Shown piece after piece: positions 32,364 to 55,400 of a DNA stretch of 64,000 nucleotides. The stretch lies in contig OZ037766.1 of assembly GCA_964035545.1 (NCBI GenBank), forward strand, positions 32,664,773 through 32,728,772, read 5' to 3'. The stretch's first letter is position 1. The number at the start of each line of letters is the position of its first letter. The translations under genes and the position numbers were made by a program. Source of the DNA: Bugula neritina. Its lineage: Eukaryota; Animalia; Bryozoa. The notes under the pieces were generated by a model that ran no database searches, was not told the origin of the DNA, and was given only the letters and a program-made list of their open reading frames with translations.

Positions 32364-35300
32364 ATGATGCGGGTGGTGAAACTCATCACTTTCTGTGTGG
32401 CTGTGACTGTCAGCACTGCAGGTAAATATTCACACTAGAATATAAATTTATATCTTGACTAAATTTGTTCATGAAAATTGAGTTATTAAAAAATAACATA
32501 CGATATAATTAACTGTAGCTCAGTCTTTTGGTCTTTTGGTTCTTTGGTAAATTATTATAGTTTGCAGCGCTATGTTAGAACGTTTCTACCTTCTTTGAAA
32601 ATACCACACATATGAAAACTTTTAATTGCTTAATTATAATTTATGAGAAGACGTGACTTTTAAAGTTGTAGGCTATTGTCTATTATCATAAACTTTCAGC
32701 AGAGTAAAAATAATATACGTACTACTTAAAATAAATTTATTTTCTCAATTGCTGGTTGGCAATTATTTATGCACACAAACTCATGTACTTTATGCTCAGA
32801 TTTCTGCAAAGCATTTTTGTGCAATTAGAGTTTGTCTAATTCAACTTAAGCGGAGATTTATTTATAATGCCAATTATTATCATCACAAGATATTAAACTA
32901 TTTTTATCATTTGGTTTTTTGCAATCCTAATTTAAATAAAAGAGCATTACTGTTGCTATAGTATTCCAAAGAAGAAAAGCCAAACCGATTATAATAGTAA
33001 TTTTTTTAGCAATAAGAAAAAGTACTATTTCTAATTTGTTTGAAGCCATATAAAATAAATTAGTGACTAGTTCTATCATGAAGTAAAAGTGATATGCAAG
33101 AATATGTACAGAACACAAAACTAAATCAATCTCAAACTAATAAAGAGAAAACTGTTTTCACCTACATAATATGTAAATTGTTATTGGTCACAAAGATTTA
33201 AGATGCATATAAGTTGGTAATCATATAGTAGTTTTTAATTTAGTAAGAGGCAAGTTTTTTATAATTATAGTGAAAACCTAGATTTGGTAAACAAGTACGT
33301 ATATATAAGCTATCACTTGAAATAAACTATAATGAGAATTGTGTATGATATGAAAGCTATACTTTAAGCCAATGACCAATTCTATTTCAACGTAGCACTT
33401 TTTTTAATAATTGCTATTTACTAATTGCTATTTAGTGAATGTGTTCTTCAAGATTAAAGAACAATTTTGCATGAAAAAAAAACTTTATTTAATACAAAAC
33501 TTTCTAAGATAAATAAATTTGAAACATGTAATCAACATAATGTATATATTTCTAATTAGCAAAGCAGGCTTCTGATGACTAAAGCAAGCAGGGTTTTTGT
33601 AATCAAAATAATCTAAACATCCCAGAATAATTATCAAACCATTAAAAGAGAAATGATACTAAGTTTACTAAATGTATTTAAAGCTTTAAAATAAGTATAA
33701 CTTTATTTTAGGTGTGAACGATTGCAGTCATTCATTTGTTTGTTTCATCAGGTTGACTTAATAAAAGCAACAATTCTGCAACATGTTGAGAATTGGAGCA
33801 TCAGATATCAAATATGTGCATGACAATTTGTGCTATGATGAGTCAAAAACCACACATATTTCGGTTTAGAGAGTAGAATTTGTTTAAACTTTGATCTATT
33901 ATAGGATAATATTTATAGCCGCCATGGCATGGAACACTTTTTTTATAAAAGTTTTGAAGCCTACATCATATGCATGCAAAAAGAAAGAATCAGCTCAAAA
34001 GTGTCAATTAGTTGGTAATATATATATATATATATATATATATATATATATATATATATATATATATATATATATATATATATATATATATATATATATA
34101 TTACCAACTAATTGACACTTTTGAGCTGATTCTTTCTTTTTGCATGCATATATAACATAAGCTTCAAACTTTTATGAAAAAAATTGTTGGTATAATTCAT
34201 TTTTGTAGCAGACAATGAAGAAATTCCAGGCAGCTACATTTTAACTAATAAAGTCCGTGATGTCACCAACTGGGCTGGAGCCAATGTCACTATGCCTGAT
34301 ATCAACTTCACCATCTGTTTCTGGGCTAAGATTGATGATTGGCATGAGACGAGAAGAAATACAATCCTCAGCATGGCTACGCCAGGTGTGGAAAGTAATA
34401 AATCATAATTTAATATTATTCATTAATTTTAACGCACATGCAAACAGATACCTTTCAAGGTATATATACTGATTTATTCTATCAATTTTAAAAAAACTTT
34501 TTATTACATACTAACTTTTAGATTATTATTTGCCTCAAAGTCAAAATAAAATAAAAAGTGCGGGCAGTTTTGGCAAAATAAATTAATAGTTTTTCTCACA
34601 GCCTTATAATTTTTGTAGCAAACGACAACTGGTTGGCTTTTGAATTAGAAAAGAAGCACATGGTTTTTGTAATCAAAAACAAATACAGCTCCGTCAACTT
34701 ATTTGATACAGAACTATCCATGTGGTACTTCTACTGTGTGTCAGCTGAAGAAACTCTGACAAACTATCAGTACACAGTAAGCTTAGCTCTACCATACAAA
34801 TCATTTTTCAAACTAGCTACTGGAATGAATTCGCTGAGTTTTGAAACTCTGAAACCTTATGTCTATTTTTTCATGTACACATGCAATATTATGTAAAAAT
34901 ATTTTTTCCACATAATATACTGTTTTTGTCAAATATAAAGCGTTAGTAAACCCAGTGAATGTGTCACTCAACTAGATCCATAATATACTTTTGAATTGTA
35001 ATTAAAGTCTATCGTACTCATATTTTTTATGCCGTGTTTTATAGTTGAGTCTTGGGGAAAATAGAGGTAATTTGGTCTGGGCCAAGAAGCTCAGCAAGAA
35101 AGTTAAGAAACCATTAGAGTCTAAACAAGATTATGCTGTAGGACTTGTACTGTTTAGTGATCAAGATAAGTTGTTTGGTAAGTTTTTATTTTAACAGATG
35201 TTCAAAAACGTCAGTAATATCGGAACTGCCCATTACTTTTGATTAACCATTTAGTTTAGTTGTTAAACACAAAGTATTTTGCTTGATTGAAATTTACTCT

Positions 35301-52400: not shown

Positions 52401-55400
52401 TATCGCAAAGTAATCAAGACATAGGTATTTCATTAATGTCTATTTATAAAATCAAATTTTTGTATTTGGATGTATCAAACATCGTTACATTCTTTATTTC
52501 TTAATTATCAAACTTGTTTTAACTTTCAAAGTGCAAATTTTCAGTAAGTTAAGCAATTCGTAAAATACATGTGAATGCTTTTTCTATTTTCCATGCAATG
52601 AGAGTATAGATGAATATTAGAAAGTTGCATTCTTTTTACCTGACGTGTAAGTAGTCATGCTGAGAATTGTACTTTTTCTTGTTTCATGCCAACTATCTAT
52701 CTTAACCCAGAAACAGATGGTAAAGTTGATACCAGGCATAGTGACATTGGCTCCAGCCCAGTTGGTGACATCACGAACTTTATTAGTTAGAATGTAGCTA
52801 CCTGGCATTTCTTCATTGTCTGCTACAAAAATGTAAAATATACCAAAACTACCTTAAAATTTTCTGAAATGCATATATTTCAATAAATGACAAAGTTAGA
52901 GAGCTTTATTTTCTGCGTAAAAGAGGCCTAAATATAAGCATATATATATAAACTTATAGGTTCTGTGAATGTCATGACTCATCCATCCGTAGTAAAGCAA
53001 AATTAGGAAATAGTGCTTTGTAAAACTTTAATATGTGTGCCTTTCTACTAGCGCTGTGCGTGGGCACATTTCATTTCAAGCTCATCAATAACTTTTTAAC
53101 CAACTTTTCTAATGGATTTCGATGCAACTAACTATATATATATATATATATATATATATATATATATATATATATATATATATATATATATATATATATA
53201 TATATATATATATATATATATATATATATATATATATATATATATATATATATGTATATATATATATACATATATATATATATATGTATATATATATATA
53301 CGTGTATATATATATATATATATATATATATATATATATATATATATATATAATATAATAAGCAGCATACTGTAGGGAGGCCGTTATGTATAGAATACAG
53401 TATTTCAAAGCTCTGAGTGCACCGAGCTGCATTTCTCTTTTGATGGCTTGACAATCATTATTCTAATGTATTAGACACAGGTTACTTTATTATGAACATT
53501 CAAAGTGAAGCTGTATATAACTTATTACTTTGATTAAAGACTGCTTACCTTTGATCAAAAGCCATTTCTGTTATTTGAAAATATAAATTATGTTTTTATC
53601 TTTTAGATGAGGTGTTTTATTTTTTTGTATTTTAGATATCCTATTCAATGTGAACTGCTATTAATCATGTATATTAAAGAACATATGGTAAGAGGCAATT
53701 AGTAAATGTACAGTATTATGTTAACATAGATTGAGTCAATTCCCTCCAGTTTTTCATCATACTTTTATCATTAGTATAGTAGCACTTAAAACATATTAGA
53801 GAAGTTTTGTCAATAAAATAGGCTCTACGGAAACCACATATCAAGTGTGTTTGAATAATACTGTATCTGTTTGTGACAGTGTCTGAGTGACTTAGATTGT
53901 AATGTAGTTTTTCTATTATAGCCAACTTGGCAACAAGTTCTTAAGTCTATTCACTCTCAAATCGTACCCTTGAAATATAATGGGAAAAATAGAAATTATA
54001 TAAACTGCTGTAAGTAAAAATATAAATCAAAAAGTCAGAGAAACACCATGAAATCAGCACAGATCCAAACAAGATTACATTAGCTATTGTAATCCAAGTG
54101 AAACTCACAAAATGGATGCACAGATAAGATTCTTTGTCATCTCAATGTCAAAACCGGTGGCCTATTCAGAGTGTAAATGTTAGAATTTAAACTGTGTGTT
54201 CATAATAATGTTGTAGCAAATGTAGTGTTGAAAGAGGGAAGTTAATAAATGTTGCTCTGCGGCTGCTTGATCAGAACACACTGACCTGTGCTGTGCTAAG
54301 GACAGTGAAATATTATAGCAACAGCACTACCAGCTAAGAATAGCTTTTGATGAATGTATTAATAACGCAAGAAAGCTTCAATGATTGGTAGCGTACCAAT
54401 ACAAATATACTAACCAGCAACAATCATTATTTGCTAGCATTTTTTCCAACTGCCTTCCGCATTTTTAAACAGTAATAGTTTTACACATATAGTTAAAAAT
54501 TTCTCTTATATTTATTAGTGGACAAATATAAGTTTAGTTTTTTGTTCTGCACATTTTTACATTAAATGATGCTAAAAAAAATTATAAATGGACATTATTT
54601 TATTTCATCCTGAATTATAACTTAAAAATGAATTTGGAATAATATTTTTCCTTGCATTTTGCTGTTCTTTCTTAAAATAGTTTATAGTTACTTTGGTAAG
54701 AGTTACGCTCTTTTATTTAAATGAGAGTAACTTAAGAGCCAAATGATAAAACTAGTTTAATATCTTGTAATAAGACTGAATAGCAGACAGAAGCAGAAGT
54801 TGAGCAGTGCATCATGGGTGTTATGAACAAAACTCTACTAATGTTGAGAGGAACAATTTTCAGTGCACAAAAATAATTTACTGACATTCAACGTAAAATT
54901 ACAAAGCTTTTCAGCAATTATAAATCTTTAATGATCAACATTTTGAGAGTTTAAGCAATTTTAAAGCTGAAATTGTGTTACAAATTCTAAACAACTGAAA
55001 CTTTCACCAGTGTTTGTAGTTAGGGTAATATAAATATGTGTATTTTCTTAATTACTACCAGACATGGCTCTACACTGCGGCTTAACAATTTGTAACGCTT
55101 TTTGCTAGTTTTTGTGAAGGTGAACTTATACATACCTTCTGATATGAAGCTGTCTGTGGCATTCAGGGTGTGGGTCATAGGAAGAGGTGAAGCAGCCTGG
55201 ACTGCAGTTGTGGCAGCAGCAGTAGGTTCTAATGCCAATGAAGAAGGAAACTCTTCACCTATGTTTCTTTGAATATACAGAGCTCCAGGTTTCAATGTGA
55301 ATACATCACCTTCGTTCCTGCAGCTGGAGAAGCCACCCAAGAAGCCATATTGAAAGGTTGAAGCCCAGATATTCAAACACGAGATAGAGCCCACTGCAAG

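Follow-up and report, generated by a model that had tools for sequence, protein, structure and literature searches.

A putative pentraxin-like gene cluster of the bryozoan Bugula neritina with near-identical framework exons and a mosaic module

Exon-specific concerted evolution by interlocus (ectopic) gene conversion is known in tandem families of recognition genes, for example MHC class I and KIR. Programmed conversion of cassettes is known from lamprey VLR assembly, the chicken immunoglobulin (Ig) pseudo-V genes, the VSG mosaics of trypanosomes and the pilE/pilS genes of Neisseria. Among invertebrate pentraxins, the C-reactive protein (CRP) of Limulus is encoded by several homologous genes, and the three gene products have the N-terminal 44 residues and a C-terminal stretch in common and differ between the two (PMC6503050). 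Here we analyse a stretch of 64,000 nt of the Bugula neritina genome (assembly GCA_964035545.1, contig OZ037766.1, positions 32,664,773 to 32,728,772; hereafter the window), which contains a cluster of putative modular, secreted pentraxin-like genes with a PAN tail. Within the modules of this cluster, outer exons that are close to identical lie next to interior exons that are highly diverged, and one module, c5 of gene P3, joins an exon a of one lineage to an interior of another.

The cluster is like the MHC class I and KIR families in its homogenised framework exons with low synonymous divergence (dS) and conflicting trees, in its old and divergent presumed binding-face exons and in its mosaic paralogs. 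It differs from them in its units, which are not only whole genes but also the modules within such multi-domain genes. It is like Limulus CRP as an invertebrate pentraxin family with constant ends and a variable middle. However, each Limulus subunit consists of a single domain and lacks the PAN tail, and the likeness is one of layout. The locus is of interest as a quantified case of exon-limited concerted evolution, in which the framework is near-identical at synonymous sites and the adjacent presumed binding-face exons are saturated. It also illustrates how phase 1-1 modules can serve to rebuild multi-domain lectin-like genes, and the pentraxin-PAN cluster is a testable candidate for an innate recognition family in a poorly studied phylum. 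The mosaic paralogs are real and the mechanism is ordinary, in that the data give no evidence of a new kind of recombination.

Self-comparison revealed that the region from 15 to 53 kb of the window is a dense array of paralogous units rather than four genes. The module exons a to d and the PAN exon e were delimited by self-comparison, translation and splice-site inspection, and genome searches covered 216,009,554 bases in 321 records. Each B module consists of four exons (a to d) and is in phase 1 at both its start and its end (1-1 symmetrical); terminal B modules carry a fifth exon, e (PAN). All B-module exons have AG/GT splice sites and the frames are open in all modules but the truncated c8. 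The earlier note on this DNA had compared the B modules of P1 to P4; we found eight close B modules rather than four: six in the window (c1 to c3 in gene P1, c4 in P2, c5 in P3 and c6 in P4) and two, c7 and c8, just past its end. A whole-genome search with exon a also returned eight copies, every one within the pentraxin cluster. The cluster is arranged as a plus-strand block that meets a minus-strand block tail to tail, such that P3 and P4 are convergent with 1.9 kb between their PAN exons.

Pairwise identity among the B modules is 84-97% in exon a, 87-94% in exon d and 84-92% in exon e, and the corresponding dS values are 0.06-0.31, 0.01-0.18 and 0.2-0.4. Exons b and c split into two interior types with dS >1 between them. 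In exon b, type I modules are 63-92% identical to one another, c5 and c6 are 61% identical and modules of different type 47-58%; between-type dS ranges from 1.2 to saturated in exon b and from 0.6 to saturated in exon c. From one exon to its neighbour dS changes 5- to 50-fold. Between c5 and c6 it is 0.87 in exon b, 0.43 in exon c and 0.01 in exon d, and between c4 and c6 the proportion of synonymous differences (pS) is 0.23, 0.64, 0.77 and 0.09 in exons a, b, c and d, respectively. Pairwise dN/dS (the ratio of nonsynonymous to synonymous divergence) is 0.3-0.6 in exons b and c. A block of 41 nt in exon a (34256-34296 in c4) is identical in all eight B modules and one of 32 nt in exon d is identical in seven, the longest exact match between two modules being 107 nt. 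The informative sites within exon a are mutually conflicting, and the introns of type I and type II modules are not alignable. Within one pair of paralogs, tracts of high identity and low dS thus lie beside far more divergent sequence, and on this comparison the framework exons appear to bear the mark of recurrent conversion between loci.

Neighbouring segments give trees that are incongruent far beyond chance, both by the approximately unbiased (AU) test and by Fisher tests on triplets of modules. In the tree of exon a, c5 groups with c8 (support 99/98) and c6 with c7 (89/90); the AU test on this exon rejects (c5,c6) with p 0.0003 and keeps (c4,c6,c7) with p 0.17. In the tree of exons b and c, (c5,c6) is supported at 100/100 against the six others, and (c5,c8), (c6,c7) and (c4,c6,c7) are each rejected (p <=1e-4). 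In exon d, c1 groups with c5 and c6, (c4,c6,c7) is rejected and (c5,c6) has support of 89/86. The triplet counts agree. For c5, exon a has 17 sites in common with c8 and 4 in common with c6, and exon b has 18 and 36 (Fisher p 0.00026); for c6, the sites in common with c7 and with c5 number 20 and 2 in exon a but 34 and 73 in exons b and c (Fisher p 2.6e-7). The conflicting trees and the dS contrast support the proposal, made in the earlier note, that paralogs have exchanged sequence; the location of that exchange inside exon a does not hold for P3.

Two kinds of exon a start are present. An ADNEE start is found in c4, c6 and c7, and a DIEMP start, one codon shorter, in c1, c2, c3, c5 and c8. 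The two junction types differ by a 3-nt indel, several substitutions, homologous upstream intron sequence and repeats, and the difference extends into the last 20-30 nt of the upstream intron. Translation recovered every motif listed in the earlier note at its place, and all four combinations of 5' and 3' ends do exist among the modules: ADNEE with FEL, WYFYCVSAEETL and YAVGLV in c4 (P2); DIEMP with EWG, WYFCC, ENWPDLVWV and KLQV in c5 (P3); ADNEE with the same type II motifs as c5 in c6 (P4, minus strand); and DIEMP with the type I motifs in c1 to c3 (P1). Junction type tracks upstream context in all eight modules, with DIEMP after an A or B module and ADNEE after the other kind of signal exon or a divergent module. 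We also considered ADNEE as a mark of the first domain after the signal peptide and ruled this out, because in both P4 and the gene of c7 a divergent module intervenes. Every ADNEE exon a is preceded, approximately 30-540 nt upstream, by a (TA)n tract that is in part a perfect palindrome (33968-34151, 53133-53360 and positions 5160-5294 of locus L009, which holds c7), and a 16-bp tandem repeat lies in the intron after an A-type module wherever a module follows one (18074-18400, 22358-22618 and 43736-43959). These tracts and repeats mark the two junction lineages.

P3 is located on the plus strand and comprises a signal exon, the A-type module A3, the 16-bp repeat, c5 and a PAN exon. As the earlier note had it, the upstream part is P1-like: the 5' part (40110-43959) contains an A-type signal exon (40110-40170), A3 (approximately 40549-42975) and the repeat (43736-43959), and c5 begins with DIEMP. 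The exons of c5 are a 44063-44236, b 44868-45022, c 45556-45688, d 46618-46821 and PAN 47337-47575. A switch inside exon a is contradicted by the sequence of that exon, which is c8-like to its last base (93.7% identity to c8 and 86.2% to c6; 12 sites in the 3' third shared with c8 and 2 with c6) and on which (c5,c6) is rejected. The alignment of c5 with c8 extends 3 nt into the a-b intron and the likeness to c6 starts 14 nt upstream of exon b. Because exon a is c8-like throughout and the c6 likeness begins only there, the 5' boundary lies within the a-b intron, probably near exon b. The a-b intron of P3 had been called P4-like; this is so for the last 14 nt, with the acceptor motif that was quoted, and not for the interior of approximately 600 nt (z 0.4 against c6). 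This interior (44237-44853) has no detected homologue in any module or elsewhere in the genome and is single-copy, as is the interior of the c6 a-b intron. A transposon origin of the two orphan introns was ruled out on the same grounds, both being single-copy in the genome.

The type II tract of c5 (44854-46821, plus strand) is common to c6 and consists of the 14 nt of intron end, exon b, the b-c intron, exon c, a patch of the c-d intron and exon d. Intron homology between c5 and c6 is limited to b-c (z 34.6) and c-d (z 6.2). Further downstream c5 is c3-like: its d-e intron is homologous to that of c3 (z 28.6), with 86% identity over 365 nt including the PAN exon, and the c3-like 3' end (47209-47575, plus strand) takes in the last 128 nt of the intron together with the PAN exon. 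The flanks of c5 are therefore like c1 and c8 upstream and in exon a and like c3 in the d-e intron and PAN exon, and its interior is like c6.

P2, also on the plus strand, comprises a signal exon (32364-32421, with a phase-1 donor at its end), c4 and a PAN exon. Its signal exon is P4-like, as previously described, and so is its promoter, with 32274-32456 matching 58272-58090 at 89% and three more collinear patches in the intron. Module c4 (34209-36495) joins the ADNEE start to a type I interior; its exons are a 34209-34385, b 34619-34776, c 35045-35177, d 35447-35650 and e (PAN) 36263-36495. P2 had been read as a second mosaic with a switch in exon a. This reading is not sustained, as the combination of ADNEE and type I recurs in c7 and no breakpoint can be resolved. 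The (c4,c6,c7) signal is restricted to a short segment, approximately -27 to +11 relative to the exon a start; the remaining exon is uninformative, and in the triplet counts c4 switches relative to c6 and c3 as parents but not relative to c7. The a-b, b-c and c-d introns of c4 are homologous to those of c1, c2, c3 and c8. Homology also links the d-e intron of c4 to that of c7 (z 25), and the a-b introns of type I modules to one another irrespective of junction type (e.g. c2-c7, c4-c8 and c3-c4). P2 needs no recombination because c7 has its combination. Judging from these alignments, P2 appears to be a member of the ADNEE lineage, as c7 is: a gene of the P4 type in which the first module has been lost and the usual interior retained.

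Taken as a whole, the pattern is probably explained by two processes: a single non-reciprocal transfer that moved a type II interior between P3 and P4, and continuing conversion of the framework exons. Under this explanation, exons a and d and the PAN exon e would be repeatedly homogenised between modules by interlocus gene conversion, and the interior (a-b intron through c-d intron) would escape homogenisation so that two old lineages are kept. The type I interior is present in six modules and type II only in the adjacent convergent pair c5 (P3) and c6 (P4), and a genome search for a third type II cassette, a possible donor, found none elsewhere. As type II is confined to these neighbours, each with an exon a sister that bears type I, one transfer between them suffices to give the four combinations. 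The conversion patch would measure approximately 1.3-2 kb, with its 5' boundary in the a-b intron just upstream of exon b. We infer that P3 was most likely the recipient, because A-lineage sequence lies on both sides of its type II patch. The event would be old, given a dS between c5 and c6 of 0.87 for exon b and 0.43 for exon c. A-type and other divergent modules share the WP-LV motif of type II exon c, which argues for type II as an ancient lineage rather than a rapidly evolved offshoot of type I; rooting type II by the divergent modules gave no resolved placement.

Neither reciprocity nor inversion finds support in these relationships. The earlier note proposed that P2 and P3 are the reciprocal products of crossovers in exon a, one parent being P1-like and the other an inverted P4-like copy, with inversion of the DNA between them. 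The existence of all four junction/interior combinations fits this proposal, the long identical blocks of exon a could be a crossover substrate, the cluster does have plus and minus blocks, and its stray PAN fragments are possible rearrangement scars. However, the four combinations need one event only, exon a of c5 is c8-like to its end and its breakpoint lies in the a-b intron, A-lineage sequence is found 3' of the c5 patch, and the combination seen in c4 is common to c7. P2 and P3 are moreover on the same strand, whereas crossover products between inverted copies would face opposite ways; a conversion patch requires no inversion. We consider reciprocal crossing-over very improbable. A single crossover in the a-b intron, between unequal or inverted copies, followed by conversion of the PAN exon of P3 from the terminal module of P1, is unlikely but deserves more weight. 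It accommodates the 5' boundary in the a-b intron, the grouping of c5 with c6 on exon d, and the fact that PAN exons have clearly been exchanged between genes (PAN exons c3-c7 are 92-94% identical). It requires two events where one internal patch is enough, though, and convergent neighbours would swap or invert whole 3' halves, of which there is no sign; the homology of c5 to c3 also reaches 128 nt into the intron, past the homogenised exon.

It is very doubtful, though a little less so than reciprocal crossing-over, that exons a and d, with their identical blocks of 32-41 nt, are kept as the homology arms of a germline cassette-exchange system that recurrently moves ligand-binding b-c cassettes between modules, genes and the plus and minus blocks, possibly with some somatic exchange. 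The variable cassettes flanked by conserved potential homology arms, and the mosaic genes, are like the VLR, chicken Ig, VSG and pilE/pilS systems. In contrast to those systems there are no silent cassette arrays here and only two cassette types, and the cassette dS of 0.4-0.9 indicates that the exchange between c5 and c6 was an old germline event. Nothing in this analysis supports programmed or somatic switching; if cassette exchange were true, the cluster would be a recombination-diversified recognition locus in a lophotrochozoan. That there was no exchange at all, with junction or interior types arising twice or exons b and c evolving fast under selection while a, d and e were constrained, is highly improbable. 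Exons a and d do encode core strands, and the dN/dS of 0.3-0.6 in b and c indicates some constraint, so that b and c could be old. Nevertheless, it is dS itself that jumps between adjacent exons, the trees within conserved exons conflict, the junction types differ also by the indel, the homologous upstream intron sequence and the repeats, and the interior types have homologous introns of their own (z 34.6 between the b-c introns of c5 and c6). Least probable of all, to the point of being barely credible, is an assembly artefact caused by chimeric joins at identical exon a sequence of paralogs. The identical blocks are at most 107 nt, frames and splice sites are intact in the modules, the switch point of c5 falls within an intron stretch that is unique and the window is without N or gaps. 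The assembly was made with hifiasm from 132-fold HiFi coverage, 27.37 Gb in 2.82 million reads with a mean of approximately 9.7 kb (PMC11480708).

Several points weigh against the explanation by one transfer with framework conversion. Some of the groups submitted to the AU test were picked with the alignments already in view. The tree of the type I interior is poorly resolved, its exons being short: (c4,c7) has support of 50/51 on DNA and 80/86 on protein, the latter in the tree of exons b and c with outgroup modules. The low dS in exons a and d could be due in part to constraint at the nucleotide level instead of conversion. The choice of P3 as the recipient is weakened by the d-e intron of c6, which had no match in the modules compared. 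The c3-like 3' flank of c5 could represent a separate, later conversion of the PAN exon, and a single crossover would then fit. The correctness of the assembly is judged from HiFi depth, the gapless window, the short identical blocks and the intact frames; among sequencing runs, a single one contains this stretch, probably that of the source sample, and an RNA run was not listed. Lastly, the pentraxin and PAN assignments rest on weak matches of single exons.

These assignments come from searches of Pfam and the PDB with single exons or single-exon profiles; the joined spliced models were only translated for frame checks. Exon d of c4 matches the Pfam family Pentaxin (PF00354) with 14.2 bits and E 0.036 over profile positions 137-170 of 194, below the cut-off of 25, and exons a to c, searched singly against Pfam, gave no match. 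A profile of the seven exon d peptides matches residues 141-175 of neuronal pentraxin-2 (chain 9lad_C) with E 0.0045 in a PDB profile search; such searches with exon a and exon e gave no meaningful match. Exon e matches PAN_1 (PF00024) with 17.5 bits and E 0.0038, below the cut-off of 21.4, and four cysteines are invariant in the five copies. The end of exon b, W-Y-F-Y/C-C-V-S-A, keeps the Cys and Ser of the pentraxin signature H-x-C-x-S/T-W-x-S but not the His and Trp. Exons c and d join as SDQD-x-LFG/GF, which we take to resemble the calcium loop of CRP (QEQD-type, before a GG-F motif). Exons b and c would presumably, by comparison with CRP, hold much of the calcium and ligand face, and they are probably ligand-binding. 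Literature searches on bryozoan pentraxins and on pentraxin-PAN proteins found nothing relevant.

The differences in exon d (e.g. 35447-35650, 46618-46821 and 50199-50402) are nearly all nonsynonymous and are clustered at both ends of the exon, one cluster lying just after the SDQD-LFG/GF loop. Pairwise dN/dS values, obtained at dS 0.01-0.03, are 8.3 for c5-c6, 3.9 for c1-c6 and 2.5 for c1-c5. This pattern could reflect selection for change on a freshly homogenised background.

The remaining features of the cluster are as follows. P1 (15322-31113, plus strand) contains a signal exon (15322-15379), the divergent A-type pentraxin modules A0 (approximately 15717-17494) and A1 (approximately 18788-21468), the 16-bp repeat (22358-22618), three B modules that all combine the DIEMP start with a type I interior (c1 22789-24530, c2 25608-27688 and c3 28764-30273) and a PAN exon (30875-31113). 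P4, on the minus strand, contains a signal exon, a divergent first module, c6 and a PAN exon. Module c6 (49472-52822), with its ADNEE start, an exon a 96.6% identical to that of c7 and a type II interior, has exons a 52822-52640, b 51982-51828, c 51496-51364, d 50402-50199 and e (PAN) 49710-49472. The 5' part of P4 (55023-58182) consists of the signal exon (58182-58125) and the first module, which is apparently decayed, with an exon-a-like part at approximately 57637-57450, an exon-b-like part at approximately 56967-56780 and an exon-d-like part from 55427 to approximately 55150.

In the first module of P4 (55023-58125, minus strand) no exon c was found by profile and the customary GGF is missing from the beginning of the exon-d-like part; the open frame of the exon-b-like stretch continues into a long (TG)n run. 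The last exon of A3 in P3 (42640-42990) is broken relative to A0 and A1 by a 2-nt insertion that leads to an in-frame stop, a 21-nt deletion and a change of the donor from GT to AT. Transcripts may skip the broken A3 and the first module of P4; P3 itself may be a pseudogene, or may splice its signal exon straight to c5.

The cluster runs past both ends of the window, as related genes are found on either side. Beyond the window end, on the minus strand, are c7 (locus L009), which is intact and preceded by another divergent module, and c8 (locus L010), which is preceded by an A-type module and an A-type signal exon and ends within exon c. Downstream of the broken c8 on the same strand there is a long open reading frame rich in charged residues and retroelement-like; this region, with the end of c8, is L010:1-2630, approximately 16-19 kb past the window end. 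Approximately 9-12 kb before the window start, a minus-strand gene (L011:2558-5933) carries two pentraxin-like modules of the divergent kind and a PAN exon with 90% identity to exon e. Two orphan fragments of PAN exons, 85-88% identical to exon e, lie at 58993-59194 (plus strand) and 62077-61983 (minus strand), between the P4 promoter and the next minus-strand gene, and may be remnants of lost genes or of rearrangements. Finally, an 18-bp minisatellite and its flank, approximately 570 nt at 80% identity, are present both downstream of P2 (37866-38433) and upstream of P1 (13297-14170).

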